IMG/VR virus record: IMGVR_UViG_3300027771_001853
Span: 233,624 to 297,623 of that record
Reading direction: 5' to 3' (one strand)
Length of the DNA: 64,000 nucleotides
The notes under the pieces were generated by a model that was not told the origin of the DNA, made no database searches, and worked only from the letters and a program-made list of their open reading frames with translations. The first letter of the stretch is position 1. Each line of letters opens with the position of its first letter. Below, piece after piece: positions 6,479 to 59,604 of the stretch. A program made the position numbers and the translations under genes.

Positions 6479-6580
6479 AAATTATCTTATATATTTTTAT
6501 TATAGTTTTATTCATACATAAATAGTGAGGGGTACGTAAAAAGTTTGTGTTTTACACCTCAAAACCCGTAAAATTTAACT

Positions 6581-7306: not shown

Positions 7307-7349
7307 AGATTAATATCTTTACATATAAATACAATAGAGATAATTAAAA

Positions 7350-28530: not shown

Positions 28531-31500
28531 TTATCCTATTATTACAGTTTTTATATTATCTTTATTCATAGTAAGCTCTACAGTTATAGTATTTAATGTT
28601 ACATATACAATCGTTGCATCGATTCTCTGACCTGCTTCTTTCCAAAGATTCACTACCACATCTAGTGTATCTAAATTATGTGTTATTGTTTCAGCTACAT
28701 TCGCTGTATAATTTCTTGTGTCCACAAATTTCTGTGGTACATTCCACGCGTATAATGTAGTTGCTGATATTGTTCCAGCTGTTAAACCACACATATATGT
28801 GGTATTAGGTTGTGTAGCTGTTAAATTGTTACACCCTATAATCGCTGACGATACAGCAGTATATTCAATCGTGTTTCCAGTACCACCAACAATATGACCA
28901 AAGTTGCCATCTACTGTATTACCGGAACCACCTAATATTGTCCCATACCCACCGGAAGGTCCAATACTATTACTTCTACCATTAAGGATTGTAGCGTAGT
29001 CTCGCATGATAGAATTATTAGTACCATTACCAATCATACTAAAATATCCTCCGTTCAAATGGCCGATTGTATTACCGGAACCACCTAAAATAACATCATA
29101 CCCTAGACCGGTTGCCCGATTACCAAGTCCACCCAATATGGATTTATGTCCAGAATTAACCACATTTCCCCAAGCTCCTGATGTATAGTCGTCAGTTATA
29201 ACATTACTATCACCACCAACAATACTACTATTAGAGATTCTTCTTATATCGTTTTGTTTACCTGCACCAATAAAATTATAGTGACCACCACCAACTATTA
29301 GATTACTCATTCCACCTACTATAGCACTAACCTTTGTTCTTCCTGTGTAATCTGTTTTTTGTGTTATAAAATTAAGTTCACCACCACCTATAAATGAACT
29401 GGTACTACCTGTAATGGTATTTCTATACCCACCAACTACTACTGAGGTGTCTGCTGATTGGATGATATTGTTATATCCGGCACCTATAAACACACCGGAC
29501 GTAGAATTGTTACTTCTAGAACCAGAGTAAGGACTATTAATTAAATTATGTTGTCCAGCAACAATTACTGAACTATTAGATTCACCACTTATTGAGTTAT
29601 TTCTTCCACCTAAAATAGCAACTGTATTTGCTGATATAATCTGGTGGTGGTGCCCATTTAAAATCGTACTGTAACTTGACCCTGATGTTATCCTATGTAG
29701 TGAACCGTTACCAATTAAATTATAACCACCCTCTTTACCTGGTCTTAATTGTGCTTTATTACCAGTTATTCTATTTTGTTTACCGTTTATAATTGTACTC
29801 CATTGTGCACCATCTTCTAAATAATTGGCGTCACCATTTAAAATAGTACCACCACGAACTGAAGCGTTATACCCACTATAACCATTTAAAATGGTTCTAT
29901 GGTTGTAAGGTTTCATAGAATCAGTATAGGTATTCCAGAAGGTGGTGTTTACAATTTTATTTTCTTGTCCATTACCTATGAAGTCATGTATTCCTTCGAT
30001 ATCATTACTGATACCATTAACAACTGAACCAAACGTACCCGGAGCTCTATTAAATAACCCCCCTTGTACTGTAGAGAAATTCCCCACTGTGGTATTTGTA
30101 CCTAAAACTGGTTTTATTGAGTTTGTGCCCGCTCCATATTGGTAAGGTCCTAGATTAGAACATGTATTTGCGGTTAATACCGCTCCTTGACATAAGGTTC
30201 CACCTGTTAGTGTCATATAAACCGTACACCCACTTGTGTAAGCGGAGGCCATATAACACCCACCAGACACGTTAGTTATGCCACTAGGTATAAATGGTAA
30301 ACTTATCCATTTTGCGTGACCATCATCAGTATTAGACATTAAGAATTTACCATTCCCTGGTGAAGCATAATTACCATGGTACCTAAATGGTCTGTGTTCT
30401 GTATTAGATACCCCACCTAGTGCTTGGGTTATGTCAGTATGAGCATCCAAACCTCTTGTATATGTTGTTTCGGAAGAATAAGCGATTAATCCCACACCGG
30501 CTGAGATGGTTGACGCACTAGCTGTAGATGATATTGTGTTTGCACTCGAGTTTAATATAACACCGTACACAGCATTAACCTTATTAAGTTTACCCGCCAA
30601 AATACTACCGTGTTCTCTAAATACTTTATTTTTAGTACCACCAACAATTGAAGCTGTTGATGCACTTATTTCATTCTGGTAACCACCTAATATAGAAGAG
30701 TAACCCCTACCCCCTTCTTTTACCAAAAAGCCATCTGTTAGACCACTTGTAATAACGTTTTTATAACCACCACCTACAAACCCCCAACCAATATCTCTTA
30801 TTACGTTCGATTGACCACCCGCTATAGTTGATTTAGTAGCTCCACTTATTAAATTTGTTTGTCCACCAGCAATCGTATTCCCAAACCTATCATTAACAGT
30901 AGGGTTACCACTCGACCCAACGTAAGGGTTTAATATTTTATTAGATACCCCACCTAGTATGGCAGATGTAGACGCTGAAGATATTAAGTTATCTTTTCCA
31001 TTTACGATAACACTATTACTACTAGCTACATTGAGTCCTACCCCAAGAATACCACTACCAGCTATAGTATTACCAGAACCACCACCTATAGAAGCGTTTG
31101 TATTATCTGGGCTAATTACATTAAGGTACCCACCAGCGATATTAGAATACTGACCTCTGGCGATATTCTCCCCTAAACGTGGTCTAATTCCGGTGTAGTC
31201 CGGTGCAGTCTCATTAAAGACGTAAGGTGTCTCACCCGATAATTGTAAATTCCATTGTACACCGTCACTTCTATGAATATTAATAATACTTGGATGTCCA
31301 CCTAGGTTGGTACCCCATGATGTGTCGTCCACATATAAATCAGTAAATACTGTAGCTGAAGACGATACTGTACCCCACATTAGTTGGTTACTACATCCAC
31401 CTGTTTGTGATGCTGGTGGAGCTAAAACTAAAGTTTGTCCAGTGGTTGCTGGACCATACATTGGGAATGTATACCCTGAAGTGGCTTTTTCAAATTTTAT

Positions 31501-31866
31501 ACCACAGTCCCCACATGGTGTTATTGTACCCGCAGTTAAAGCTGAATCACAAAATTCAGGAAACACACTAAGAGTTAGAGTACCATCACCAAATGAATCA
31601 GTAATTGTAATACCAGAACCACCAATTAAACTATAAAAATTTAATGTACCGTTATCTGCAGCATAAGTTTTGCTATGGTAAACCCCGAAAGTACCTGCAG
31701 GACCAACATTAAGACCAATGGTGTCGTTAATCTTTTGATTTAACATCAAAAGACTCGTATCTAATTCGGCCCAACTTAGGACAGAACCTTTTGGTATTGC
31801 TTGTCCAGCTATGGGGGACGCATTTGAACGAGTAAAAAATTGACTCGGATATGGGGTTAAAGGCAT
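28531..31866 (-). CDS. fibre/adhesin-like protein (1111 aa), paralog of 23103..28529
   Basis: Same repeats and hinge (IPSGIT..SG...AYTSGCT...TANTCSN.GPY..G.GTNSI.PVLG); N-terminal KGSVLSWAELD; C-terminal THNLDTLDVVVNL. Confidence 0.8.
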   Translation of the reverse strand: MPLTPYPSQFFTRSNASPIAGQAIPKGSVLSWAELDTSLLMLNQKINDTIGLNVGPAGTFGVYHSKTYAADNGTLNFYSLIGGSGITITDSFGDGTLTLSVFPEFCDSALTAGTITPCGDCGIKFEKATSGYTFPMYGPATTGQTLVLAPPASQTGGCSNQLMWGTVSSSATVFTDLYVDDTSWGTNLGGHPSIINIHRSDGVQWNLQLSGETPYVFNETAPDYTGIRPRLGENIARGQYSNIAGGYLNVISPDNTNASIGGGSGNTIAGSGILGVGLNVASSNSVIVNGKDNLISSASTSAILGGVSNKILNPYVGSSGNPTVNDRFGNTIAGGQTNLISGATKSTIAGGQSNVIRDIGWGFVGGGYKNVITSGLTDGFLVKEGGRGYSSILGGYQNEISASTASIVGGTKNKVFREHGSILAGKLNKVNAVYGVILNSSANTISSTASASTISAGVGLIAYSSETTYTRGLDAHTDITQALGGVSNTEHRPFRYHGNYASPGNGKFLMSNTDDGHAKWISLPFIPSGITNVSGGCYMASAYTSGCTVYMTLTGGTLCQGAVLTANTCSNLGPYQYGAGTNSIKPVLGTNTTVGNFSTVQGGLFNRAPGTFGSVVNGISNDIEGIHDFIGNGQENKIVNTTFWNTYTDSMKPYNHRTILNGYSGYNASVRGGTILNGDANYLEDGAQWSTIINGKQNRITGNKAQLRPGKEGGYNLIGNGSLHRITSGSSYSTILNGHHHQIISANTVAILGGRNNSISGESNSSVIVAGQHNLINSPYSGSRSNNSTSGVFIGAGYNNIIQSADTSVVVGGYRNTITGSTSSFIGGGELNFITQKTDYTGRTKVSAIVGGMSNLIVGGGHYNFIGAGKQNDIRRISNSSIVGGDSNVITDDYTSGAWGNVVNSGHKSILGGLGNRATGLGYDVILGGSGNTIGHLNGGYFSMIGNGTNNSIMRDYATILNGRSNSIGPSGGYGTILGGSGNTVDGNFGHIVGGTGNTIEYTAVSSAIIGCNNLTATQPNTTYMCGLTAGTISATTLYAWNVPQKFVDTRNYTANVAETITHNLDTLDVVVNLWKEAGQRIDATIVYVTLNTITVELTMNKDNIKTVIIG

Positions 31867-34405: not shown

Positions 34406-36724
34406 CTAAAATTTCTCTGTTTTTTTAATGTTTCTACGTGTTTTTAAATCATAAGCTTTTCTTACTTTTCTAGAACCATCACCTAAAGCTGGGAAATTAT
34501 GATTATCGTAACATGTTTTAAGTGGTCTTAAATTAGTTGCCTTTTTCATACCACTTTTTAACATACCAGCTTCAAACCTAATTAAAATCTGACAATACTT
34601 TTTTTGTTGTTTACCAGAAGAATTCATAACATCTTTTTGTAACTTACCTCTTTTACCTGGTACACTTTCACTTTGTGTTTCTTCTTTTTCAGGTTTTACT
34701 GGACTAGGTTTTACTGTTGTTGTGTCTGTGGTAACTGTTTCTTCTTCAGGTTTTACTGTTTCACCAGCAGTCTCATTCTTATATTTTAAAGTTTCCAAAG
34801 CTATTAAATCATCACAATCTATAACCCCTCTTTGTGATTGGTCACTCTTACCTAAAAAGGCATTAACAGCTGTTTTAGTTTCTGCACCGAAGTCACCGTC
34901 TGCTCCATGTTCAGGTAATTTATAACCATTTCTTATCAATTCTTTCTGTAGTTGTTTAACACCACTTCCACTATCACCTAATTTAAACACATTAGTACAT
35001 TCTTTTACTGAGTCATATGATTTTGTTTCTTTTTTCTTTTTTGGTTTGTTTTCTTCACCAGCAGTGTTGTCAACTTTTCCTCTAACTCTACGGATTCTAT
35101 GTTTTCCCTCAATCTCACTTCTACTATATTTTTGTTCACCTAGAAAATGGTTTTCTTTTATTAACCTTTCCAAACCTTTATAAGCTTCTTGTAATACCTC
35201 AAAATCAGCCGCATCCATCACATATGCGATTGCTGCACCTTGTAATACATGATTTTGTCTTTTTGCTGTTCTAGGGTTATCTTGTACCATCTCATCATAA
35301 ATGACATCAGCATAACCACCAGGACCAGCAATAGTACCTAAATCTTCACCTTTTTCATAAAGTTCTCCGGCTACCTCAATATCCCTACCTAATTCGTAAT
35401 CACCACCAGTAGAGTCACCCTTTCCAAATATTTTTAATATAGCTGCTCTATCATCTGCGTCCGCTATTGCTCCTACTTTTTTATTAGGTAACAATAAATA
35501 AACTTTATCTTCAGAATTTTCTATATATTCAAACTGTCCTAAATATTCTTTTCCTGCGGCTACAAATACTGGAGCTACATTACCATCAACAAACACATCA
35601 ACAGTATCACCATCAAATAATAGTTTAAATTTAACTCTTGTGGCTGGTAAACCTTCTGGTCTATTAACCATATCATTCGCTAAATTTTCTATTTTATCGT
35701 TTAAGTCCTCTGGACTATATATTTTTTCACCATCAATAATACAAATAGGTTTATCTCTTAATATATCAGCAATCGGTTGGAAGTCACCCTCATCCAATTC
35801 ATCTAATAATTCTTCTAACAAAGGTGTCCCAAATTTTAATTGGTAGATACCTGATAAGTGTGAACAATCGTAAAGTGAATTTATTTGTCTAAAAGCTGAG
35901 TAGATATCATCTTCTTCTGTACCAGCACCTTTTGTAGCTCCAAAAGACAACACATCAACAACCCCTTTACCAAAATATTTTTCACCACCTTCAGTAGCAT
36001 CATTAATTACATCAGCTAATTGGGATAATGCTCCTTCATCTTGAAAATTAAAAGGTATTTCCTGTATTAGACCTTGTTGTTCTACTTGGTCGTAAACTTC
36101 CGGTGTAAAAGCGATAGATAAGTAATCGTCTTCACTTAACTCACCACCACCAGACCAATCCTCCATAGCTGAGGCTGCGTTTCCTGGTACTTTCGCACCA
36201 CTACTACCTATATTACCTATAAGATACGCTCCCGTACCCCAAGTTAATAACCTGTTTAATCCAGAAGCGGCTTGTTTATTAATAATTGCTTTACTTACAT
36301 TAAGTGGTACAAGTCCTTTGCCTAATTTTTGACCAGTAGCTATTTTTGACGCGATAGACGCTGGTACACCCTTTAACCCAGTTGTACTTACTCTACCAAA
36401 CCCACCTATCCATTTTAAACCATTAGGTAAACTTTTCATTATACCACGACTACCTATCGATGCTCCACCTCTACCTATATTAGCTAAACCTCTAACAGCT
36501 GTAGGAAGAATTCTTGCTAGTCCAGCAATTAATGGTGCCCACTCAGTTAAAAGAGCGTACGGTTTTTCACTATTATTTTTTTTAGTATTTTTTGGTGTTA
36601 ACTTATCTAAGTTATTATATTCTAATAAGTCTTTTTGTTCTGTATGTGGTTGTGCTCTGTCGAACCCAATTAAATACTGTAAAGAGCCTAATTCCTCTTT
36701 AAGATTTTGTTTGTCTTTTTGCAT
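34406..36724 (-). CDS. multidomain protein: Gly-rich amphipathic segment, annexin-like repeat, peptidoglycan-binding domain
   Basis: ATKGAGTEEDDIYSAF...YQLKFGTPLLEELLDELDEGDF; FKLGDSGSGVKQLQKELIRNGY...GADGDFGAETKTAV (PG_binding_1 pattern); start reassigned to MQKDKQ. Confidence 0.75.
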   Translation of the reverse strand: MQKDKQNLKEELGSLQYLIGFDRAQPHTEQKDLLEYNNLDKLTPKNTKKNNSEKPYALLTEWAPLIAGLARILPTAVRGLANIGRGGASIGSRGIMKSLPNGLKWIGGFGRVSTTGLKGVPASIASKIATGQKLGKGLVPLNVSKAIINKQAASGLNRLLTWGTGAYLIGNIGSSGAKVPGNAASAMEDWSGGGELSEDDYLSIAFTPEVYDQVEQQGLIQEIPFNFQDEGALSQLADVINDATEGGEKYFGKGVVDVLSFGATKGAGTEEDDIYSAFRQINSLYDCSHLSGIYQLKFGTPLLEELLDELDEGDFQPIADILRDKPICIIDGEKIYSPEDLNDKIENLANDMVNRPEGLPATRVKFKLLFDGDTVDVFVDGNVAPVFVAAGKEYLGQFEYIENSEDKVYLLLPNKKVGAIADADDRAAILKIFGKGDSTGGDYELGRDIEVAGELYEKGEDLGTIAGPGGYADVIYDEMVQDNPRTAKRQNHVLQGAAIAYVMDAADFEVLQEAYKGLERLIKENHFLGEQKYSRSEIEGKHRIRRVRGKVDNTAGEENKPKKKKETKSYDSVKECTNVFKLGDSGSGVKQLQKELIRNGYKLPEHGADGDFGAETKTAVNAFLGKSDQSQRGVIDCDDLIALETLKYKNETAGETVKPEEETVTTDTTTVKPSPVKPEKEETQSESVPGKRGKLQKDVMNSSGKQQKKYCQILIRFEAGMLKSGMKKATNLRPLKTCYDNHNFPALGDGSRKVRKAYDLKTRRNIKKTEKF

Positions 36725-36770
36725 AATAATTATTTTTCTCCTATAAATATGTTTATAACGGTAAAAAAAG

Positions 36771-37364
36771 TTACATATAAGTAGGATTCCCCTTACCTCT
36801 TGTAACTTTACTTTCCCATGGTGCTCCACTTTGTAGTGGATTAGCGTTTGCTCGTGTTAAACCAGTGTCGTGTGGTCCTCCACTTTGTAGTGGGTTCCCT
36901 TTCCCTCTTGTGACCCCTGTTTCCCATTCTGGTGCTCCTGTCCCACCCCCACCACTTGGTGTTGAGGTGTCACTACTCGTTGTATCTAGTCCTCCGTCTA
37001 GGTCTTGTTCAGATAAATCATCTTCATTACTACCCAACCATTCATCCAATAAATCTCCAGCTATTCCATTAACTCTGCCATTTATTTGAATTAGTGTTGG
37101 TTCTTCCTCTTCTATGGTTATTTCCTCCATAGCTTGACTTATAAGGTCTTCCCTAAACTCTTCAATAACTGTATTAATGTTAATTTCTTCACCTAACTTA
37201 GTTTCTAAATCTAGAAAATTGAAAACATCTACACTTATGTCGTCCCCAACAATAGGTGCTTCATCTTCGTATTCAGTACCATCGTATTCGGTATCGTATT
37301 CTTTTAATACTTTCCTTACTAAATTTTCTATGTCGGATTCTGTTAGTTTTACCACCTTTCTCAT
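36771..37364 (-). CDS. KLTE-leader protein with three C-terminal W(E)xxVTRGxxNP repeats
   Basis: MRKVVKLTESDIENLVRKVLKE; WETGVTRGKGNPLQSG / HDTGLTRANANPLQSG / WESKVTRGKGNP. Confidence 0.75.
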   Translation of the reverse strand: MRKVVKLTESDIENLVRKVLKEYDTEYDGTEYEDEAPIVGDDISVDVFNFLDLETKLGEEININTVIEEFREDLISQAMEEITIEEEEPTLIQINGRVNGIAGDLLDEWLGSNEDDLSEQDLDGGLDTTSSDTSTPSGGGGTGAPEWETGVTRGKGNPLQSGGPHDTGLTRANANPLQSGAPWESKVTRGKGNPTYM

Positions 37365-37632: not shown

Positions 37633-38181
37633 ATGAAATATCCTAAACTTGTACTTTTACTTTCACTATTAATAACTTTTACTTCTTGTGAAAAAAATGA
37701 ATTCGATGATTACCCACAACCACCAACCACAGTAGATGTTGATTCTGACAATACTAGTGTCGTAACGGACGATTACCCAAACCTTAGTGGTAAATGGTTA
37801 TTATATGAGGGTATAAGATATACACACACTGAGGGTATGGCCTCTACTGATACCTACGATGTAACAGAATACGATGTAAACGGATACGAAAATGTTTATA
37901 ACTCACCACAAACACCATTAGATAGCGTGTCTGTTAATAACACTGTTTGGGAACTCACTTATAACGATTTGTTAGTTAATTACCAATATAATTTTGTATA
38001 CGTTATAGGTAACTTTAATAATACCGTAGAAATAAACACTGGAGGCACAAAAAGAATATTCACAATCCTAGAGTACGAAAACTTAGGAACTGAGTTAAGA
38101 ATTAAAACTGCTAACCAAGAATGGTTAGATAATGGTGTACCTAAGTACCAGTTTAGTATCTTGAAATTTTATAAGATTTAG
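37633..38181 (+). CDS. lipoprotein, lipocalin-like
   Basis: Signal MKYPKLVLLLSLLITFTS-C followed by EKNEFDD; LSGKWLL motif. Confidence 0.75.
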   Translation: MKYPKLVLLLSLLITFTSCEKNEFDDYPQPPTTVDVDSDNTSVVTDDYPNLSGKWLLYEGIRYTHTEGMASTDTYDVTEYDVNGYENVYNSPQTPLDSVSVNNTVWELTYNDLLVNYQYNFVYVIGNFNNTVEINTGGTKRIFTILEYENLGTELRIKTANQEWLDNGVPKYQFSILKFYKI

Positions 38182-47190: not shown

Positions 47191-47270
47191 TATAAATACT
47201 TTGTAACATATTATAAATATTTTCGTACACCATATTAGTAACCAATAAAAATTAATATCTTCGTAATATG
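47191..47270. repeat. copy B of the 80-bp bidirectional promoter cassette
   Basis: See 37380..37459; ends at the ATG of the first CAP gene. Confidence 0.92.
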
Positions 47271-47867
47271 AAAAAAATAACACTAACATTCATCCTAATC
47301 CTACTTTCAGTACTTGGGTTTTCCCAGTATAGTGACTTTGAGTTGGCGGTGGCTGATGGGGTGAACGAATATAGAAACTCACAGGGTTTGTCAGACTTAG
47401 AATTTTTACCTTCATTAAGTGACAAACTGGATTTCTTACTGGAGAGGGTTGTTGATGCTAATTCGTTGTGGGGACCTGATGGGGGACACTCTTCAAATTT
47501 TAAATATTCTGGTAAACTAATTTCTGAACAGATTAAAGAAAATACCGTACCCAATAAAGAAATAGAAACGTTATACAAAAGTATAAAATTTAAATATGAG
47601 TCAGTAAAAATGATACGAGGTGAAGGAGAGACAACGTTTAACTCTATTTCACATTTAGCTGGTGAAAATTTATTTCGTACAAATTATGATATGGACCCAA
47701 AAAGGTTTGTGGTTAACTGGATAAACTCACCAACACACGAACATATAATGACTTTAGATAAACATAGAGAAAACGTAGTCCCTATTGGTGTTGTTAATGT
47801 GATTTACGATGGTCAATGGTGTTACGTTACATTCATAATAATATTATTAGAAAAAGAAGACCTTTAA
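47268..47867 (+). CDS. secreted CAP (SCP) domain protein
   Basis: Signal peptide MKKITLTFILILLSVLGFSQ; VNEYRNSQGL, HS, AGENL, WINSPTH. Confidence 0.8.
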   Translation: MKKITLTFILILLSVLGFSQYSDFELAVADGVNEYRNSQGLSDLEFLPSLSDKLDFLLERVVDANSLWGPDGGHSSNFKYSGKLISEQIKENTVPNKEIETLYKSIKFKYESVKMIRGEGETTFNSISHLAGENLFRTNYDMDPKRFVVNWINSPTHEHIMTLDKHRENVVPIGVVNVIYDGQWCYVTFIIILLEKEDL

Positions 47868-50112: not shown

Positions 50113-50820
50113 ATGAAAAAATACATTTATACTGGTGAGTATTTTCACCAAACAAACGAACATTATCCTAGTAATGATGTAAAGATTGGTCTTACTAAGG
50201 ATGTCTTACAGAGAGAACGTGAACTTACTGGGACCAACGGCCCAATTAAGTACGAAATGACCAGTGTGTGGGAAATTTCTATAGAAAATATAGAAAACCC
50301 CGCTTTTATTGTGGAAAGTATATGTCATTCTTTCTTTCACTTATTCAGATACGATGGGAATGAGTGGTTCAATACGGAATTATTGGGTAAATCAGCGTTT
50401 TACACGTGTTTAAGTCGGGGGTTAGCTTCTTTAAATAGAATTCCTGGTGTAAAGATAACTAAGGTTAATGACATAATAGATAGTGAGACGGATGAGACGG
50501 TAGAAAAGCGTAGGAGATTGATTACGAAACTAGGAAATTCCGAAGGTGACCCAAGAATCGTCGAGTTGTGTGAGAAGTTAGGTGAATCTGAGGTGGAATT
50601 AAGAAGATACTATAAGGGTAGTGAGGTTTCGGTAACTGTAACCGCGGATGGGAGGTATAAGTTCATGGGTATAGATTATAACACACATAATAAAATGTAT
50701 AATAATGGTATTGTTCTAGAACATAGGGGTGTTAAGGGTGGTAGTGGTAATAGTTCTCTTAAACCGTACACTATATATAAAACAGGTGATAAAGTTAGTG
50801 ATATAATAGAATTAAAATGA
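50113..50820 (+). CDS. T5orf172/GIY-YIG family protein
   Basis: KYIY...VKIGLTKDVLQRERELTGTNGP...VESICHSFF...GNEWFN. Confidence 0.8.
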   Translation: MKKYIYTGEYFHQTNEHYPSNDVKIGLTKDVLQRERELTGTNGPIKYEMTSVWEISIENIENPAFIVESICHSFFHLFRYDGNEWFNTELLGKSAFYTCLSRGLASLNRIPGVKITKVNDIIDSETDETVEKRRRLITKLGNSEGDPRIVELCEKLGESEVELRRYYKGSEVSVTVTADGRYKFMGIDYNTHNKMYNNGIVLEHRGVKGGSGNSSLKPYTIYKTGDKVSDIIELK

Positions 50821-51972: not shown

Positions 51973-52131
51973 ATGAAAGAAATAGACCAAATGTTAGAAC
52001 AATGGATACCAGTAAATACCATTATTAGGAAACAACTAAGAGATTTAATAGTTAAAGAAATAGAAAAAGAAAGAACCAGGGAAAGGATAAAACTATTAAC
52101 CTGGGATAACCAATTAAAAAATAAAAGATGA
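51973..52131 (+). CDS. 52-aa hypothetical protein (not in ORF track)
   Basis: MKEIDQMLEQWIPVNTIIRKQLRDLIVKEIEKERTRERIKLLTWDNQLKNKR; stop overlaps ligase ATG. Confidence 0.55.
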   Translation: MKEIDQMLEQWIPVNTIIRKQLRDLIVKEIEKERTRERIKLLTWDNQLKNKR

Positions 52132-53432
52132 ATGAAAATTTAAAAAAAATACAAGGTATGGTGGACGAACTAAAATCCACCAACGCGACAAATGAAAAAA
52201 TTACAATCCTTAAAAAATATAAAGACGATGAATATCTTTGTGCTATACTAGAAACTGTATATTCCCCATTTAAACAATTCTATGTGACCAGTAAGACCTG
52301 TAAAAAAAATAAGAAATTAGTTAACGAACATTACCTTGGTAGTGTTGATATGTTGTTATATAATCTAAGTGGTAGGGTTTGGACCGGTCATGACGCAATC
52401 TCATACATTAATGGACTAGTCTCCAACTACCCAGAATATGAAGAACTAATATATTCACTTATAGATAAAAACTTAAAGACAAGAACGGGAGCGGACCTAA
52501 TAAACAAAGCAATACCAGGATGTGTCCCAACTTTTAAGGTAGCGTTAGCTAACTCTTATGATAAACAAAAGGGTAAGGTTAATTTTGACACACAAAAATG
52601 GTTTGCCTCACATAAGTTAGATGGGGTTAGATGTTTAGCTATAATAGATGAAAATGGAAATTGTAATTTCTTCTCAAGACAAGGTAAGACATTCGATACT
52701 TTAGATGTACTTAAAAATGAAATAGAGAGTTTAGATTTGTGTAATATGGTACTTGATGGTGAAGTGTGTATTGTCGATGAAAATGGAGCAGAAGACTTTC
52801 AAGGTATTATGAAAGAGATTAAAAGAAAAGACCACACAATCCAAAATCCTAAGTACAAAGTATTTGATTACTTAATGTCAGATGAGTTTGACAGCCAAAA
52901 AAGTAAACGTACATTGAGTGATAGGTTAGGTAAGTTTAACATGATATATAATACATTTGGAAAAGAGTTAAAATGTATTGACGTGTTAGGTCAGTGGGAA
53001 GTAGAGTCAGAAGACCACTTTCAGGAACTCGCAGAACTTGCAACAAAAAATAATTGGGAAGGTTTAATCTTACGTAAAGATTGTGAGTATAAAGGTAAAA
53101 GAAGTAATGACCTACTTAAGGTTAAAAAATTCTTTGACGAAGAATATGTGGTTACTGGTGTCGAGAACTCAATACATAGAATAATTGTAGATGGCTTAGA
53201 GGTGGAAGAAGAAATGCTTAGTAATGTAATTATTGAACATAGGGGTTGTGATGTTGGTGTCGGTTCTGGGTTTAGTCAAGAAGAAAGAAAACTGTACTTT
53301 AAAAGACCGGAACTTATTATTGGTAAAACAATAACTGTTCAATATTTTGAAGAGACTTTAAACCAGGATGGTTGTCATTCTTTACGATTTCCTGTGGTTA
53401 AACATGTGTTTGAAAATGGTAGAAATGTATAA
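52128..53432 (+). CDS. lig: ATP-dependent DNA ligase
   Basis: SHKLDGVRC (KxDG), LDGEVC, KVFDYL, WEGLILRK, LLKVK, VGSGF, SLRFP. Confidence 0.96.
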   Translation: MNENLKKIQGMVDELKSTNATNEKITILKKYKDDEYLCAILETVYSPFKQFYVTSKTCKKNKKLVNEHYLGSVDMLLYNLSGRVWTGHDAISYINGLVSNYPEYEELIYSLIDKNLKTRTGADLINKAIPGCVPTFKVALANSYDKQKGKVNFDTQKWFASHKLDGVRCLAIIDENGNCNFFSRQGKTFDTLDVLKNEIESLDLCNMVLDGEVCIVDENGAEDFQGIMKEIKRKDHTIQNPKYKVFDYLMSDEFDSQKSKRTLSDRLGKFNMIYNTFGKELKCIDVLGQWEVESEDHFQELAELATKNNWEGLILRKDCEYKGKRSNDLLKVKKFFDEEYVVTGVENSIHRIIVDGLEVEEEMLSNVIIEHRGCDVGVGSGFSQEERKLYFKRPELIIGKTITVQYFEETLNQDGCHSLRFPVVKHVFENGRNV

Positions 53433-53555
53433 TAAAATAAATTTAGATAAACAGAATCGTATGTTACGGTTTGGTTTTGGAAAACATAACGGAACCTGGT
53501 TCATAAGAATAGACCTTTGGTACTTCGGAATAAGGATATACAAAATATAATAAAT

Positions 53556-56030
53556 ATGAAATTTACAATAGATTTAAAGGAGGTCTGTCTTGACGACATA
53601 CCATTAGTAGGTGGTAAAAACGCGTCACTAGGTGAGATGATTCAAAATTTAACTAAAGTAGGTATAAAAGTACCAGGTGGTTTTGCTGTCACTTCTGATG
53701 GTTATTGGGAGTTTTTACGTTATAATGGTTTAAAAACTATAATTAGGAAATTAGTGGAATCCATCAAGGAAGACGATGTGGTGTCATTAAGAAAGGTCGG
53801 TAATGAAGTTAGACAAATTATAAGAAATGGAAAATGGCCACAAGAACTAAAAGATGAGATTAGAGAAAAGTATAATCAGATGTGTGAAGAGTACGGACAC
53901 GACATGACTGATGTAGCTGTTCGTTCATCAGCTACAGCTGAAGATTTACCTGACGCGTCTTTTGCCGGTCAACAAGAAACCTATTTAAATGTTAGGGGTC
54001 CAGAAACATTATTAGAGTCCGTTAGGAATTGTTTTGCTTCCCTTTTTACTGATAGAGCAATTTCATACAGGGGTACTTTTGGTTTCGACCACTTCAACGT
54101 AGCTCTTTCGGTATGTGTACAAAAAATGGTTAGAACCGACTTAGGTTCTTCCGGTGTAGCGTTTTCTATAGATACGGATAGTGGTTTTAAAGATACTGTA
54201 TTGATTAACTCGTCTTATGGTTTAGGTGAAATGGTTGTACAAGGTTCTGTATCTCCTGATGAGTTCCTAGTATTTAAACCAACACTAGAAAAGGGGTTTA
54301 GTTCTATTATAGAAAAAAAGATGGGTATAAAAGACAATAAAATGATTTACGGTAGTGACCCAGGTAAATTAACGAAAATAGTACAAATACAAGAATCACA
54401 ACAAAAAGAATTTTCTATAAGTGATAAACAAGTATTAAAAATTGCTGAATGGGTTACTTTTATAGAAAGGTATTATTCGGAACGTAAGGGGTCGTGGTGC
54501 CCTATGGATATAGAATGGGGTATAGATGGTATGACTAACGAATTACACATACTACAGGCTAGACCAGAAACAATACATTCTCGTAAGACTAATGATACTT
54601 TGGTTGAGTATAAACTACAAAAGAATGACGACAATAAAGTAAAATTAAAAGGTATAGCTGTTGGTGACAGGATAGGTTGTGGTGAAGTAAGGATACTCCA
54701 TTCAATAGATGGTAGAGATGGTAGTCTTGATGGTGCTGATTTTAAGGCTGGTGATGTGTTAGTAACTGATATGACCGACCCAGACTGGGAACCTTTAATG
54801 AAAAAAGCTAGTGCTATAGTAACAAATAAGGGTGGTAGAACTTGTCACGCTGCAATTGTAGCTAGGGAATTGGGTGTCCCAGCGTTAGTGGGTTGTGTAA
54901 ATGCTACAGAAAAACTTGTAGATAATGAAGTGGTTACTGTAAGTTGTACAGAAGGTGATGTGGGGTTTGTTTATGAGGGGGAAGTTAAATACGATAAAAT
55001 AGAAACATCACTTAAAGACCTACCAGAAGTTAAAACACCAATAATGTTAAATGTGGCTTCACCAGATTTAGCTTTTAAATTCTCGAGTCTACCACATAGT
55101 GGTGTTGGTTTGGCTAGAGAAGAATTCATAATAAACAATTATATAAAAGCTCACCCACTTGCTTTATTGAGACATAAGGGTTTGGGTGACGAAAAATTAA
55201 GTAAATCTATAGAACAACTAACACAAGGGTATAAGGATGAGGAAACTTTTTTCGTTAAAAGATTGTCTTATGGTGTAGCAAAAATAGCTTCAGCTTTTTA
55301 CCCACAAAAAGTTATTGTTAGGTTATCTGATTTTAAAACTAATGAATATAGAAATTTATTAGGAGGAGAGTACTTCGAACCAGTAGAGGAAAACCCAATG
55401 ATTGGTTGGCGTGGAGCTTCAAGATATTACTCAGAAGAATATAAAGAGGCTTTCGGAATGGAGTGTAAAGCGATTAAAAGAGTTAGGGAAAAAATGGGAT
55501 TAAGTAATGTAACTATTATGATTCCTTTTTGTAGGACAGTAGAAGAATTACATAAGGTTTATGGTGTAATGAAAGAATATGGTTTAGAACGAGGTAAAGA
55601 TGGGTTAGAGGTTTATTTAATGGCCGAGTTACCCTCAAACATTATACTAGCTGAAAGTTTTGCAAAACATATAGACGGGTTTTCAATTGGTTCTAACGAC
55701 CTAACACAATTAACCTTAGGTTTAGATAGAGACTCTTCTTTAGTTGCTCACTTATACGACGAAAGAAACGAATCGGTTAAAGAATCAATTAGGACACTTA
55801 TAAAGGTGGCTAAAAAAACTAAAACAAAGGTGGGTATATGTGGACAAGGACCTTCAGACTTCCCTGATTTTGCTTCGTTTTTAGTTGAGGAAGGGATAGA
55901 TAGTATATCGGTTACCCCCGATTCCCTACTTAAAACTTTAAAGACACTTAGTCGTCTTGAACGGGATTCAGATATTAGGTATTCTGCCTCTATAGATGGA
56001 CCAGGTCAACCAGTTAAAGAAATTTATTAA
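53556..56030 (+). CDS. ppsA: phosphoenolpyruvate synthase (pyruvate, water dikinase)
   Basis: VGGKNASLGEM, VAVRSSATAEDLPDASFAGQQETYLN, GGRTCHAAIVARELG (phospho-His), EENPMIGWRGASRY, FSIGSNDLTQL, GICGQ. Confidence 0.97.
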   Translation: MKFTIDLKEVCLDDIPLVGGKNASLGEMIQNLTKVGIKVPGGFAVTSDGYWEFLRYNGLKTIIRKLVESIKEDDVVSLRKVGNEVRQIIRNGKWPQELKDEIREKYNQMCEEYGHDMTDVAVRSSATAEDLPDASFAGQQETYLNVRGPETLLESVRNCFASLFTDRAISYRGTFGFDHFNVALSVCVQKMVRTDLGSSGVAFSIDTDSGFKDTVLINSSYGLGEMVVQGSVSPDEFLVFKPTLEKGFSSIIEKKMGIKDNKMIYGSDPGKLTKIVQIQESQQKEFSISDKQVLKIAEWVTFIERYYSERKGSWCPMDIEWGIDGMTNELHILQARPETIHSRKTNDTLVEYKLQKNDDNKVKLKGIAVGDRIGCGEVRILHSIDGRDGSLDGADFKAGDVLVTDMTDPDWEPLMKKASAIVTNKGGRTCHAAIVARELGVPALVGCVNATEKLVDNEVVTVSCTEGDVGFVYEGEVKYDKIETSLKDLPEVKTPIMLNVASPDLAFKFSSLPHSGVGLAREEFIINNYIKAHPLALLRHKGLGDEKLSKSIEQLTQGYKDEETFFVKRLSYGVAKIASAFYPQKVIVRLSDFKTNEYRNLLGGEYFEPVEENPMIGWRGASRYYSEEYKEAFGMECKAIKRVREKMGLSNVTIMIPFCRTVEELHKVYGVMKEYGLERGKDGLEVYLMAELPSNIILAESFAKHIDGFSIGSNDLTQLTLGLDRDSSLVAHLYDERNESVKESIRTLIKVAKKTKTKVGICGQGPSDFPDFASFLVEEGIDSISVTPDSLLKTLKTLSRLERDSDIRYSASIDGPGQPVKEIY

Positions 56031-56068: not shown

Positions 56069-56428
56069 ATGAAGTTAACAAAACAACAATTAAATAAAAA
56101 ACTAAGGTCAAAAATACTAACACTACAAGCACGGAAAAAAAATCTAAAGGATTTACGAATTATGGTGGTTAGGGCAAGAAACGTAGATGTAACAAATGTT
56201 TTGTACCGTCACACTTCTGTAACTGTAAAAATATCAGGAGAGGTTAAATCCAGTAACGACAAATGGCTTCCTTTACAACTTTATAGACCAAACCAAATTA
56301 GAAAATTTTTACGTAGGAAGGATGTCGGTATAGTTGAATCTGTAAGTAAGTGGGTTAGATTGTGGGGTTTTGATAGTGATGTGTCCCTAGAGACGATAGA
56401 CATTGTTAATAAGGTTTTACCTAATTAA
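56069..56428 (+). CDS. basic hypothetical protein
   Basis: ATG 4 nt after TATCTTTG (56057-56064). Confidence 0.65.
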   Translation: MKLTKQQLNKKLRSKILTLQARKKNLKDLRIMVVRARNVDVTNVLYRHTSVTVKISGEVKSSNDKWLPLQLYRPNQIRKFLRRKDVGIVESVSKWVRLWGFDSDVSLETIDIVNKVLPN

Positions 56429-56947
56429 ACTAACTTGTCCTGTATAGTGTTGGTTGTGGGTCCTAATTGAATACCCGTATACACCTATTTGACAACCCTT
56501 ACCATCCCAGGGGCTATTATTTGTAGTCTCATATATTTTCTCACCCCACCTATTAAAAATTATCATCAATTCTATATCACCCTTGTCAGCACCATGCACA
56601 TAAAAAGTCTCATTGGAGTTATCTTCGTTTGGTGTAAAAGAGTTAGGTACGAATATTTGTAGGTAGGGACAGTCCTCTATTATTACTTCGTGGTACGAAG
56701 TATCACCTTCACACCCAAACCTTGTAGTATAAACAGATATTATGTACGTACCTATAGAGTCAGGCCATTGTACTGTAATTGAATTCCCTTGGTCGTATAT
56801 GATTTGACCTTGTGAAATATCCCAGTAATATAATTTATCCACATCATAACTTACTTGGTATTCTTGTGGTACTATGTCACCACAATTCGTATAAGTTTCT
56901 TGTGCGAATAATTGCAGTGGTAGTAATATGTATACTAACCACTTCAT
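56417..56947 (-). CDS. secreted protein: PKD-like domain plus type IX secretion type B C-terminal domain (gliding-motility-associated CTD)
   Basis: Signal MKWLVYILLPLQLFAQ; IFVPNSFTPNEDNSNETF, IFNRWGEKIYET, WDG, GVYGYSI, TGQVSLIR-stop. Confidence 0.88.
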   Translation of the reverse strand: MKWLVYILLPLQLFAQETYTNCGDIVPQEYQVSYDVDKLYYWDISQGQIIYDQGNSITVQWPDSIGTYIISVYTTRFGCEGDTSYHEVIIEDCPYLQIFVPNSFTPNEDNSNETFYVHGADKGDIELMIIFNRWGEKIYETTNNSPWDGKGCQIGVYGYSIRTHNQHYTGQVSLIR

Positions 56948-56948
56948 A

Positions 56949-57491
56949 TTAAAAGTGTTGTATTGGTCCTGTTACCGGTCCGTTATTTACTATAACATTG
57001 ATGGTTGTATTACAACCTGCCATTGAGTAAGTTAGTACGTAGTTTCCTACACCTGCTGTTGATGGTTGGAATGTATTAGCTACTACACCTGTTCCTGTCC
57101 ATGTACCACCTAACGGGGTACCTACTAATGGTGTTGTTGGGTCACCAGGACAAAAAGGTCCTATGACATTCCCAGATAAATCTAACACAAACACGTCTAA
57201 TAGTACCGGCGTTCCAGGACAGTTGGCAGCGTTTGATTCTATTACCTCAATTGCGTTTGGGTAAAGTCCTGAACCAACTCCCGTGTAATCCACGGTAATT
57301 GAATTCGTTCCTTGTCCTGTACTTAATGTTCCACCACCTGTAACTACCCAATTATATGTTGACGTTGGTGTGTTTGTTACAAAGTATTGTTCCCCAGTTG
57401 CGTTTACACACACTGTGTCTGGGTTGATTGTTGTTTGTCCGTATGTTGCTAACCCGAAGCAAACTAATAGAACTGTAAGTAATTTTTTCAT
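56949..57491 (-). CDS. secreted protein with two PKD/Ig-like domains
   Basis: Signal MKKLLTVLLVCFGLATYGQ; TYNWVVTGGG...GQGTNSITVDY; GGTWTGTGV....F.PSTAGVGNYVLTYS; ends GPVTGPIQHF. Confidence 0.8.
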   Translation of the reverse strand: MKKLLTVLLVCFGLATYGQTTINPDTVCVNATGEQYFVTNTPTSTYNWVVTGGGTLSTGQGTNSITVDYTGVGSGLYPNAIEVIESNAANCPGTPVLLDVFVLDLSGNVIGPFCPGDPTTPLVGTPLGGTWTGTGVVANTFQPSTAGVGNYVLTYSMAGCNTTINVIVNNGPVTGPIQHF

Positions 57492-57557
57492 AGTTTTTGT
57501 TTTTTTTTGTTTATGTTTTGTCTTGTTTTCTCGTGAATAAACAAGACAAAGTTATTA

Positions 57558-58121
57558 TTAATAATGATTTATGTTCGACGTAATGGGTGTTACTACTTGA
57601 ACGTTTCCGTTGTATATGTTAAAGGCTGGGTCAGTACAACACGCCCCATTGTTCCAACCACCAGTAAGACAATCTCCTATTACGTTTATACCAATAGACA
57701 AATCATCAGGAGTACATGTTGGTCCTACAGTTACTCTAAATCTCATTGTGAATGGTCCTGTTGAACTACTTCCCCAGTCTGGATTAAAACCTGTGTTAAT
57801 AAATCTCCATCCAGGTCCAAAATTTAATCCACTTGGGTACGTATTTTGTACATCCCACGTCCAGGTTCCAGGTTGTGTTCCTCCACCTACTGGAGTTATT
57901 AATGGTATTAAGTTAGTCCATCCTGTCCCTAAGTTAATTTGAAATGCGATTATCCAATTTATGTTTAGTTGTGTGAATGTCCCTAATGTATAATCCACAG
58001 CGACAACATCTCCTGGTTGATATGGTCCAACTGGTGTCATAGTAAACGACTGATTTGAGACACACTGTGAATGAACGGTTAAGTTAATAAATAAAAATAA
58101 TACAAATAATAGTCTTTTCAT
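57558..58121 (-). CDS. secreted beta-rich protein
   Basis: Signal MKRLLFVLFLFINLTVHSQ; ends TPITSNINHY; upstream TATTTATA 58139-58146. Confidence 0.75.
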   Translation of the reverse strand: MKRLLFVLFLFINLTVHSQCVSNQSFTMTPVGPYQPGDVVAVDYTLGTFTQLNINWIIAFQINLGTGWTNLIPLITPVGGGTQPGTWTWDVQNTYPSGLNFGPGWRFINTGFNPDWGSSSTGPFTMRFRVTVGPTCTPDDLSIGINVIGDCLTGGWNNGACCTDPAFNIYNGNVQVVTPITSNINHY

Positions 58122-58176
58122 TAGATTAGTCCTTTATATATAAATAGTAGTTAAAGGGTGACCATTTGTCAAACCA

Positions 58177-58721: not shown

Positions 58722-59273
58722 CTAAACTCTTTTAGACGTACCAATTAACTGATAATAATCTTTTTTACCCTCTAGGTATTCTTTACATAATTTTAACATT
58801 CCTTTAAACATGAAAGCACCTGTGGTTTGTTTTTCACACTTACAAAATAATTCAACAAGTGTGGCTATTAGGTCTATTGGTAAGGCACCAATATCATCTA
58901 ATTCCTGGTAGGTTTTCGACAACCCTTTGGTATATCTTAGTTTATAACCGTCTCTTTCCTCTACAGTTGTAAATGGTTCTATATTATCATAAACAATACT
59001 TAAAGCGTTAACCAAAGATAATGTAGCTCTCTTGTTTAGTTCTCCTTTAATTACCAAATCAACAATCCAGTGTGTATGTGATGGTGTTCGTAATCTTTTA
59101 TTTGGTTCTTTATATTTTACGATAAAATCTAGGTCTGGGTTTTCCCCACGAAATCCTTGGTATATCGCTACTATGGTACCGTCTTTCATTTCCCATTGGT
59201 TTAACGGGTAACTACGTCTATCTTCGTTTTTTATTTTATAGGATAAATCTACTATTTTACTTTGCTGGGTCAT
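58722..59273 (-). CDS. hypothetical protein
   Basis: 183 aa globular ORF; RTPSHTHWIVDL. Confidence 0.7.
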   Translation of the reverse strand: MTQQSKIVDLSYKIKNEDRRSYPLNQWEMKDGTIVAIYQGFRGENPDLDFIVKYKEPNKRLRTPSHTHWIVDLVIKGELNKRATLSLVNALSIVYDNIEPFTTVEERDGYKLRYTKGLSKTYQELDDIGALPIDLIATLVELFCKCEKQTTGAFMFKGMLKLCKEYLEGKKDYYQLIGTSKRV

Positions 59274-59556
59274 ACCATTTATATTTTAAAGTTAGTTCTT
59301 CACCACGTTGTATGGTTTTTTTAGTTTTAATCTGAATTAAACCATCATCCTCAACTCGTTCACAGTTAGGTTTTTCCGAATGGTTTATAAAACCACCTAG
59401 TGGTGTTCTAACGTAACTATCTTCGAATCTAATGTCTTTTACGTGACTTATGCCCATAAATAAATCTTTATCTAAATCATCTATAGCGAATAGACCTAGT
59501 CCTTGTACTTCAGATTCTTTAATTGTTAGGTAGTGTGGTAGAGGTTTGTAATTCAT
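59257..59556 (-). CDS. SET-domain protein-lysine methyltransferase-like
   Basis: GLGLFA, GGFINHSEKPNC, GEELTLKY; start reassigned to MNYKPL. Confidence 0.88.
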   Translation of the reverse strand: MNYKPLPHYLTIKESEVQGLGLFAIDDLDKDLFMGISHVKDIRFEDSYVRTPLGGFINHSEKPNCERVEDDGLIQIKTKKTIQRGEELTLKYKWYDPAK

Positions 59557-59604
59557 ATAATTAAATGTAACGAATAAAAACATAAATTTCCAATATTTAT
59601 TGAT

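Follow-up and report, generated by a model that had tools for sequence, protein, structure and literature searches.

We analysed a 64,000-nt stretch of DNA (the window; positions 233,624 to 297,623 of the IMG/VR record IMGVR_UViG_3300027771_001853). It carries three co-directional genes on the minus strand, here g1, g2 and g3, downstream of a single promoter-like motif. The features of the locus are as follows.

58139..58146, minus strand: TATTTATA, promoter-like motif, 18 nt upstream of the g1 start codon
57558..58121, minus strand: g1, 187-aa predicted secreted head subunit, with a signal peptide (residues 1-18, then Gln19), a predicted beta-sandwich domain without Pfam match, and a C-terminal tail
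57561..57590, minus strand: g1 C-terminal tail, TPITSNINHY followed by the stop codon
56949..57491, minus strand: g2, 180-aa predicted secreted adaptor subunit, with a signal peptide (residues 1-18, then Gln19), a PKD_6 domain, a second Ig-like domain and a tail
56952..56981, minus strand: g2 C-terminal tail, GPVTGPIQHF followed by the stop codon
56417..56947, minus strand: g3, 176-aa putative carrier or anchor subunit, with a signal peptide (residues 1-15, then Gln16), a PKD_6-like domain and a type B T9SS C-terminal domain (CTD)
56654..56899, minus strand: g3 N-terminal PKD_6-like domain (residues 17-98), homologous to the first domain of g2 and the proposed docking site for a tail
56420..56653, minus strand: g3 type B T9SS sorting domain (residues 99-176)

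Signals, domains and tails of the three proteins

The observation made in the initial annotation, namely three co-directional genes with Sec signals ending at Gln, a type B CTD in the third and a shared tail in the other two, was confirmed. The g2 stop and the g3 start are 1 nt apart (TAATATG), while a 66-nt spacer separates g1 from g2. The motif TATTTATA is a recurrent phage promoter-like element: the window has 23 copies against 13.7 expected, of which 21 lie on the minus strand, and about 17 sit 12-44 nt upstream of a start codon, including those of genes in the structural region. The copy upstream of g1 is the only one in the module, so the three genes probably form one transcription unit; it is kept upstream of g1 in two related contigs (L001 and L005).

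Each N-terminus looks like a Sec signal followed by Gln (g1 ...VHS|QC, g2 ...TYG|QT, g3 ...LFA|QE), with cleavage sites read by eye. In g3, the N-terminus MKWLVYILLPLQLFA|QE has a basic start and a hydrophobic core, as judged by eye and with a simple script. Q19, Q19 and Q16 are invariant in alignments of 35-40 homologs each, matching the Bacteroidetes Q-rule for signal peptidase I substrates (PMC5837995).

We searched the three proteins against domain models. The C-terminal domain of g3 (residues 99-176) scored above the curated cut-offs of both type B models, PF13585 CHU_C (49.5 bits, cut-off 27) and TIGR04131 (40.3 bits, cut-off 35). In contrast, neither g1 nor g2 matched CHU_C, Por_Secre_tail or TIGR04131/TIGR04183, even at E up to 1. 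The g2 protein matched PF19408 PKD_6 over residues 21-88 (35.2 bits, cut-off 25; E=1.6e-8). The N-terminal domain of g3 falls below the Pfam threshold for PKD_6, but it is homologous to that of g2 by profile comparison (hhalign probability 82%, E=1e-5) and also by BLASTP (E=0.001). Beyond the signal peptide, g1 and g2 are not detectably related. None of the three proteins contains SprB repeats (PF13573), although larger relatives of gene 1 do, nor hits a Pfam pilin family, and PHROGs gave no useful hit for any of them.

The AlphaFold2 model of g1 (mean pLDDT 87.7) is a beta-sandwich, with the tail as coil lying outside the fold. A fold search of the PDB gave only generic beta-sandwich or pilin-like matches (TM at most 0.43), and a profile search of PDB sequences for g1 found nothing. 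The g2 model was poor (pLDDT 48), and was not used for fold search.

Despite their lack of relationship, g1 and g2 both end in I-x-H-[YF]-stop, the I and H being invariant or nearly so across hundreds of homologs. They are the only 2 of 83 window ORFs of at least 80 aa that end in I.H[FYWND], for which the chance expectation is about 9e-5 per protein. The tails are kept in at least 120 homologs of each gene. In g1, T181, I184 and H186 are invariant in 40 homologs; in g2, G171, P172 and T174-Q178 are invariant and H179 is kept in at least 90% of 35 homologs. The pattern initially proposed, PxTxxIxH[FY], is however too narrow. Distant relatives of g1 end ...ISHN, ...INHN, ...ILHN or ...IWHN, and host and other phage versions of g2 end ...GPIFHN, ...GPINHW, ...LPIQHN, ...GTITHD or ...PGPIIFN. 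Across distant relatives the constants are Ile at -4, usually Pro at -5 and His at -2, and a terminal N, D, Y, F or W. The tail is not in Pfam, NCBIfam or PHROGs, and the papers we searched do not describe it.

Several readings of the tail were considered and dropped. An outer-membrane beta-signal was dropped because the alternating hydrophobic pattern is absent; g1 is modelled as a beta-sandwich and g2 contains PKD_6. A lipoprotein or type V pilin was dropped because there is no lipobox: Gln precedes Cys20 of g1, and g2 and g3 have no Cys at +1. A sortase-type or CTERM sorting signal was dropped because no transmembrane segment follows the motif. For an Asx-His-Val type ligase site, g2 and most relatives lack Asx at that position, and a remnant of a type B CTD is not supported since the tail shows no similarity to the start of CHU_C. 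The echo THNQH[YF] inside the g3 CTD is not invariant, and a His-to-His pairing between the tail and the first strand of host gene 3 does not hold for gene 2 or for the phage versions.

Phage and chromosomal versions of the module

The window belongs to a roughly 298-kb marine phage: it encodes a major head protein, a portal and a large terminase, and the trio is 100% identical on a 297,623-bp IMG/VR contig. A megablast of 14 kb of the window against INPHARED gave no match, and tblastn against the same database matched only two unannotated huge-phage records. The trio is a linked unit. It is kept together in related phage contigs while flanking genes differ, and also when the gene order is permuted to g2-g3-g1 (loci L015, L016 and L018). 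Miniature trios occur in at least two other phage-type contexts, a 642,751-bp contig (L040) and contigs with a phage lysozyme gene next door (L038 and L039). In one of these (L038), g2 is only a signal peptide, one PKD_6 domain and a tail, 113 aa in all. As exception to the linkage, one tail-bearing g1-like gene (P0388; L008, L009) sits on a 2-kb contig with no g2 or g3 next to it. All three genes are under purifying selection (dN/dS 0.06-0.22).

The module is not a phage invention, in contrast to what the initial annotation implied. The same three-part arrangement, in larger form and in the same gene order, lies in chromosomal contigs of marine Flavobacteriales MAGs, between guaA and lolA/ftsK. 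These contigs reach 382 kb, 392 kb and 1.06 Mb, and the flanking genes are bshC, guaA, lolA and ftsK. Host gene 1 shares 50-68% identity with g1 over the head, and host gene 3 proteins give weak PKD_6 hits at the same position as the g3 N-terminal domain. The host gene 3 is only 350-430 aa; type B CTDs are not restricted to very large proteins, at whose end the initial annotation considered them normal. A LysM plus periplasmic-binding-protein-like gene precedes gene 1 in many host loci, but it is missing from all phage versions and from several host loci. No beta-barrel or PorP/SprF-like carrier gene was found beside the trio in the window, in related phage loci or in the host operons; two barrel-like proteins in loci L014 and L018 matched no Pfam family.

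Genes 1 and 2 of all split versions end in the tail, and gene 3 never does. The host tails end I-x-H-N or P-I-x-x-[ND]; a subclade of host operons lacks the His, so that the motif is looser than in the phage. Both tails of an operon fall in the same class, either both with His at -2 or both without, although this co-variation rests on only one or two independent lineage splits.

We also identified relatives that carry head, repeats, PKD and type B CTD in a single chain (proteins P0365 and P0369, and the protein of locus L037). The g3 protein is 36% identical (E=4e-15) to the C-terminal PKD plus CTD of P0369, and the second domain of g2 aligns weakly to a middle domain of the same protein (E=0.05). 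More generally, the g1 domain forms the N-terminal head of many single-chain type B and type A CTD proteins. The head therefore normally travels with a CTD.

A proposed split adhesin and its alternatives

The interpretation in the initial annotation, a phage-encoded split adhesin or filament whose CTD-less subunits would complement the Ig fold of the next subunit or hitch-hike on the CTD carrier, was partly supported. The split-adhesin idea gains Rosetta-stone support from the single-chain relatives. Our preferred explanation, held tentatively and at somewhat less than even confidence, is that the three genes are a phage-borne, miniaturised copy of a conserved three-gene operon of marine Flavobacteriales encoding a split, T9SS-dependent cell-surface adhesin. 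In this view, all three products are exported by Sec and cut by signal peptidase I to expose Gln, and only g3 carries a T9SS signal. Its CTD would take g3 through the host translocon onto a host PorP/SprF-like carrier, which would keep it on the cell surface. The absence of an adjacent carrier gene has a precedent, since orphan type B substrates in F. johnsoniae use a SprF-like carrier encoded elsewhere (PMC12618676), and type B cargo stays bound to PorP-like proteins at the surface (PMC9143113, PMC10994853). The distal head would be g1 and the adaptor g2. Each ends in a free C-terminal peptide of the form P-I-x-H-x-COOH, which we propose docks onto the N-terminal PKD_6 domain of the next subunit, g1 onto g2 and g2 onto g3, so that the head would be carried out and displayed through g3. 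The counts match, with two tail donors (g1, g2) and two homologous N-terminal PKD_6 domains (g2, g3).

The analysis establishes the domains, signals and tails, the gene linkage, the host operon, the fused single-chain relatives and the purifying selection. The docking of tails onto PKD_6, strand complementation, the T9SS- and carrier-dependent secretion of g3 and the co-export of its partners are inferred from sequence alone. The same applies to the view that the phage probably remodels the surface of the infected cell, either to add adhesion or to mask or replace a receptor; the benefit to the phage is guesswork. Some observations weigh against the docking model. The PKD_6 domains of g2 and g3 appear complete, each with its own first strand, and there is no obvious vacant groove for a donated strand. 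We could find no precedent for co-export of a CTD-less partner through the T9SS, and both the g1-like gene without neighbouring partners and the host operons without His fit less well.

The fixed length of the tail at the extreme C-terminus, with Ile always at -4, suits recognition of a free carboxyl end by one common reader. It may thus suggest that the tail is itself a new, minimal secretion or sorting signal, recognised directly by a host component such as a PorP/SprF-like carrier, the translocon or another outer-membrane factor. Each CTD-less subunit would then be exported or anchored on its own, and the three proteins would meet only at the surface, if at all. The shared class of the two tails of an operon and the isolated g1-like gene are consistent with this, and some F. 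johnsoniae T9SS cargo reportedly have atypical C-terminal signals (Kulkarni et al. 2017, cited in PMC10994853). We consider this unlikely, however. Known T9SS signals are folded domains of about 80-100 residues, not pentapeptides (PMC10994853, PMC12618676), and this reading explains neither the tight three-gene linkage, nor the matching count of tails and PKD_6 domains, nor why gene 3 always keeps a full CTD.

At least three phage lineages kept only the interface parts (head, tails, PKD_6, CTD) and lost all stalk repeats. This could reflect a dominant-negative or blocking device, the alternative offered in the initial annotation, in which the short g3 with its partners would occupy the host type B carrier or the translocon. 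It would displace the long adhesin of the host, which may be the phage receptor, resulting in superinfection exclusion, less adsorption to debris or altered gliding. Phage resistance in Flavobacterium often maps to gliding and T9SS genes (PMC9804748, bioRxiv 10.1101/2020.10.02.323337), and the g1 head is close in sequence to the host head. Nevertheless, g3 alone would be enough to jam a carrier, yet g1 and g2 are always retained and are under purifying selection, with which this alternative fits poorly. Nothing identifies the host operon product as a receptor. The alternative is neither supported nor excluded by our data, and we consider it unlikely; it concerns the benefit to the phage and can coexist with the docking model.

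Least likely, in our view, is that g1 and g2 stay in the periplasm or are simply released, with the tail having a local role in each protein. It could cap the last beta-sandwich, or serve as a C-terminal tag read by a periplasmic PDZ protease or by the LysM/PBP-like protein that often precedes the host operon. The modelled coil conformation of the g1 tail and the position of the LysM gene are consistent with this, and aromatic C-termini are classic PDZ ligands in other bacteria. However, the last domains of g1 and g2 are unrelated, so a shared local structural role is not parsimonious, and the head at the N-terminus of many single-chain CTD cargo proteins points to a surface destination. The LysM gene is also not consistently present.

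A further-reaching possibility, which we regard as less likely than not, is that the P-I-x-H-x-COOH tail is a new kind of trans-acting assembly and export tag for the T9SS. It would be a free C-terminal docking peptide that lets proteins without a CTD bind the N-terminal PKD_6 domain of a type B CTD carrier, to be co-exported and displayed as a multi-subunit adhesin. Abundant marine Flavobacteriales would use this system, and several lineages of large phages would have captured it in minimal form. T9SS cargo are thought to need their own folded CTD; a conserved operon in which two of three exported subunits lack a CTD but share a short C-terminal peptide would show how multi-subunit surface structures are built and exported by Bacteroidota. 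The phage versions are natural minimal constructs (g2 as small as 113 aa, g3 of 176-193 aa), convenient for structural and secretion assays. The proteins are abundant in Tara and other ocean metagenomes, tie a jumbo-phage lineage to uncultured marine Flavobacteriales hosts, and suggest that phages remodel the surface of infected cells, which bears on adhesion to particles and on phage receptor dynamics in the sea.

Comparison with known systems

Phage surface-remodelling and superinfection-exclusion proteins such as T5 Llp and Cor are likewise small secreted or envelope proteins made by a phage that change the surface of the infected cell, but there is no sequence or structural relation, and that function is only a hypothesis here. 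In the donor-strand assembly of type V pili (FimA, Mfa1) of Bacteroidota and of chaperone-usher pili, a terminal peptide of one Ig-like subunit binds the Ig-like domain of the next, as in the logic proposed here. Type V pilins, however, are lipoproteins processed by a protease and have the FimA fold, whereas the subunits here are predicted signal peptidase I substrates with PKD_6 domains, the g1 fold did not match pilins convincingly, and strand exchange remains hypothetical.

The grappling hook protein GhpA of Aureispira (PDB 9flp) is the only solved protein whose sequence matches the g3 CTD (E=1.2e-8). It is a large protein of a Bacteroidota bacterium ending in the same kind of domain, but it is a single 5898-aa chain and shows no relation outside the CTD. 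Phage-encoded T9SS cargo have been described in "Cryophage", a phage of a Bacteroidota host whose proteins with T9SS sorting domains are presumed to use the host system (Bellas et al. 2020, PMC7468147). Those are single enzymes or PA14 proteins with type A domains; they are not a multi-subunit set, have no shared tail, and no matching host operon was described.

The single-chain SprB-like adhesins of Bacteroidota and of huge phages, for example the 1670-aa protein in LR756502.1 (locus L007, 379-5391), share the head domain (31% identical to g1), Ig, PKD or SprB repeats, a type B CTD, and a signal peptide followed by Gln. In these proteins all parts are in one polypeptide, without a tail motif at a free C-terminus. 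Finally, type B CTD cargo with PorP/SprF-like carriers (SprB/SprF, Fjoh_3952/Fjoh_3951, PG1035/PorP) end, like g3, in a type B sorting domain after a Sec signal. The carrier gene is usually adjacent, in 9 of 12 cases in F. johnsoniae; g3 has none beside it, like the three orphan substrates of this species, which share the carrier Fjoh_1677 (PMC12618676, PMC9143113). The module described here differs from these systems in that the passenger is split over three genes, two CTD-less partners carry a conserved C-terminal pentapeptide, g3 itself is minimal at 176 aa, and the module is also carried by phages.

The three-gene module and its phage context

The initial annotation placed three minus-strand ORFs in this region, and all three lie exactly where it put them; its observation holds. 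The genes are:

57558-58121 (-), g1, 187 aa
56949-57491 (-), g2, 180 aa
56417-56947 (-), g3, 176 aa

The g2 stop and g3 start are one base apart, while 66 nt separate g1 from g2. A single TATTTATA lies 18 nt before the g1 start codon. This motif is not a chance hit, since the window holds 23 copies (for example at 7324, 8584, 17028, 37380, 46755, 49679, 58139 and 60992) against 13.7 expected. Of these, 21 are on the minus strand, and about 17 sit 12-44 nt upstream of start codons, including those of genes in the structural region; the motif is sometimes duplicated, 11 or 21 nt apart. It is also kept upstream of g1 in two related contigs (L001 and L005). It is a likely phage promoter element, and the trio therefore looks like one transcription unit driven by a phage-type promoter.

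The window is a phage: it encodes a major head protein, a portal and a large terminase, as well as a PEP synthase and an ATP-dependent ligase. The trio is 100% identical on IMG/VR contig IMGVR_UViG_3300027771_001853 (297,623 bp), and the window therefore comes from a jumbo phage. A megablast search with 14 kb of the window found no near DNA match in the INPHARED phage collection. Other genes of the window are:

21058-23106 (+), a 682-aa ATP-dependent (Lon-like) protease with a very strong match to phrog_4871
23103-28529 (-) and 28531-31866 (-), two back-to-back giant ORFs (1808 and 1111 aa) with no Pfam match; the next large ORF (34406-36829) has a peptidoglycan-binding domain
47268-47867 (+) and 37633-38181 (+), two more candidate exported proteins, one of 199 aa with a signal ending ...GFS|Q and a weak CAP-domain hit, the other of 182 aa with a lipoprotein-like signal (...TFTS|C)
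50113-50820 (+), a T5orf172/MUG113 (GIY-YIG-like) protein, a possible homing endonuclease, next to an ATP-dependent DNA ligase (52128-53432)
53517-56030 (+), an 837-aa phosphoenolpyruvate synthase / pyruvate phosphate dikinase-type enzyme (PPDK_N, mobile domain and PEP-utilizers_C all strong), which is convergent with the trio and looks like an auxiliary metabolic gene
59257-59583 (-), a 108-aa minimal SET-domain protein (PF00856, E=1.1e-9) just upstream of the module, a very small SET methyltransferase-like gene in a phage

We found that g3 matches the type B T9SS sorting domain above both curated thresholds (PF13585, 49.5 bits against 27; TIGR04131, 40.3 against 35), and that g2 matches PKD_6 with 35.2 bits against 25. 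The first domains of g2 and g3 are homologous (hhalign probability 82%, E=1e-5; BLASTP E=0.001). In contrast, g1 matched no family in the Pfam, NCBIfam and PHROGs searches, and is not detectably related to g2 apart from the signal peptide. With a 68-sequence alignment, AlphaFold2 models g1 as a beta-sandwich with mean pLDDT 87.7, the last ten residues being modelled as coil; no solved structure resembles it convincingly (TM at most 0.43). All three proteins start with a Sec-type signal, read by eye, followed by Gln, and that Gln is invariant in each family. This is the Bacteroidetes Q-rule for signal peptidase I substrates (PMC5837995), which phages of Porphyromonas have been noted to follow too (PMC10367356), and it points to a Bacteroidota host.

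The C-termini of g1 and g2 read ...TSNINHY and ...TGPIQHF, respectively. Only these two of the 83 window ORFs of at least 80 aa end in I.H[FYWND], the chance expectation being about 9e-5 per protein. Each gene has hundreds of marine-metagenome homologues (292, 397 and 217 hits), and in the 120 listed for each of g1 and g2 the tails are kept. T181, I184 and H186 of g1 are invariant in its 40-sequence alignment, as are G171, P172 and T174-Q178 of g2 in its 35-sequence alignment. The last hairpin of the g3 CTD (56420-56450, residues 163-168) reads THNQH[YF] in most homologues, which echoes the -Q/N-H-[YF] of the g1 and g2 tails; however, it is not invariant, so it may be coincidence. All three genes are under purifying selection, with dN/dS of 0.06-0.22.

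Across related phage contigs, the trio stays together while its neighbours change, these including DUF2828, RimK, AhpC and PEP synthase. In contigs L015, L016 and L018 the order is g2-g3-g1, but all three genes are still present. Related phage contigs also encode a 1028-aa protein with a type A T9SS tail (Por_Secre_tail), followed by a 355-388-aa secreted protein ending in a beta-barrel-like ...GINYI[IL][LF], which has no Pfam match and could be a phage-borne outer-membrane partner (L018:3027-6113 and 6110-7177; L014:10305-11471).

Host operons and other phage versions

The main new result concerns a host operon. An exhaustive phmmer search with g1 showed that its domain is a common N-terminal head of long Bacteroidota-type proteins, which end in type B or type A sorting domains. 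Some relatives with 55-57% identity (proteins P0365, of 1109 aa, and P0369, of 712 aa) carry head, SprB-type repeats, PKD and type B CTD in one chain, and g3 aligns to the C-terminal 138 residues of P0369 at 36% identity (E=4e-15). Other relatives of very different lengths (194-745 aa) have no CTD and end in the same kind of tail (...ISHN, ...IWHN, ...ILHN or ...INHY). One g1 homologue (P0100, NCBI MBC8303260.1) is deposited as a protein of a "Pelagibacterales bacterium" MAG on a 4.9-kb contig, which is probably a phage contig binned by mistake.

A scan of one genome per species found 19 loci in marine Flavobacteriales and Cryomorphaceae MAGs. Wherever the region is complete and split, the architecture is the same:

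gene 1, the head plus repeats, ending ...PISHN, ...PINHN, ...PIWHN or ...PPPILSD
gene 2, a signal peptide, PKD_6 and Ig_7 domains, ending ...GPIFHN or ...PGPIIFN
gene 3, a signal peptide, PKD_6, PKD and CHU_C

Several of these loci are on contigs of 105 kb to 1.06 Mb, flanked by a radical-SAM gene, bshC and guaA on one side and by lolA and ftsK on the other, and are therefore genuine chromosomal operons. Databases call the proteins "hypothetical", "PKD domain-containing" or "gliding motility-associated-like". In many host loci, gene 1 is preceded by a 430-480-aa secreted protein with a LysM domain and a weak periplasmic-binding-protein-like region (L022:4524-5933, L021:4662-5963, L029:4512-5939), which all phage versions and some host loci lack. 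In the 1.06-Mb MAG contig (L033:7124-7986), gene 2 appears broken into two overlapping fragments (150 and 143-163 aa) while genes 1 and 3 are intact, which could reflect a pseudogene or an assembly error. The two tails of an operon belong to the same class, in that either both have His at -2 or neither does, although this covariation rests on only one or two lineage splits.

Miniature trios also occur in other phages. On a 642,751-bp contig (L040), g1 is 220 aa and ends ...LINHN, g2 is 188 aa and ends ...LPIQHN, and g3 is 193 aa with a CTD. Another set lies on contigs with a phage lysozyme gene next door (L038, L039), in which g1 is 203 aa and ends ...QILHN, g3 is 191 aa with a CTD, and g2 is only 113 aa, a single PKD_6 domain plus the tail ...GTITHD. 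The head of a GEVED-domain protein of Virus NIOZ-UU157 is 62% identical to g1. The huge-phage records LR756502.1 (642 kb) and LR745206.1 (635 kb), which have no annotation, carry several single-chain type B T9SS cargo proteins of 1670, 898 and 732 aa (L007:379-5391; L041:275-2971; L042:707-2905), the 1670-aa protein having 13 SprB repeats.

A proposed docking model and comparison with known T9SS cargo

The module has a head, an adaptor and an anchor. Since the head domain normally travels in the same chain as a CTD, its inferred destination is the cell surface; in the split versions it has no CTD, yet it is always encoded with a small type B CTD protein. There are two tail-bearing subunits and two subunits that begin with a homologous PKD_6 domain, and the smallest adaptor is just PKD_6 plus a tail. 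The simplest model is that each tail docks on the PKD_6 domain of the next subunit, so that the head would be carried and displayed through g3. In this view, g3 itself would be handled by a host PorP/SprF-like carrier encoded elsewhere, as shown for orphan type B substrates of F. johnsoniae (PMC12618676), and would stay anchored to that carrier (PMC9143113, PMC10994853).

The tails resemble the linker and first strand that precede the next Ig-like domain in multi-domain relatives: for example, ...SSNINDVSC... follows the head in the relative P0370, and ...APSAIDEVAC... lies between repeats of gene 2 at locus L011. This fits an origin by gene fission at a domain boundary, and it would also suit edge-strand pairing. 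While the domains, tails, gene linkage, host operon, single-chain relatives and selection are results of our analysis, the binding of tails to PKD_6, the co-export and the surface display are all inferred. The AlphaFold2 monomer model of g2 was poor, the PKD_6 domains appear to have their own first strand, and our literature search found no report of co-export of CTD-less partners through the T9SS. The interpretation in the initial annotation, a split adhesin or filament whose CTD-less subunits polymerise or hitch-hike on the CTD carrier, is only partly supported.

Any benefit to the phage can only be proposed. At least three phage lineages kept all the interface parts and the head but lost the stalk repeats, and all three genes are constrained, which favours a working mini-adhesin or a surface-remodelling complex over a simple plug. 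The blocking of the host machinery suggested in the initial annotation is neither supported nor excluded. A competitor role remains possible: the trio could displace a long host adhesin, which might be the receptor, from its carrier. That role is compatible with the docking model.

To our knowledge from this search, phage-encoded T9SS cargo has been reported once, as type A single proteins in "Cryophage" (PMC7468147). Large aquatic phages predicted to infect Flavobacteriia have been described as moraphages, at 200-307 kbp (PMC12619734). The split three-gene architecture, its host operon and the C-terminal tail are not in Pfam, NCBIfam or PHROGs, and we did not find them in the papers searched. 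We regard the module as belonging with T9SS type B surface cargo, from whose described forms it differs in this split architecture and tail; if tail-mediated docking and co-export are confirmed, the mechanism itself would be new.
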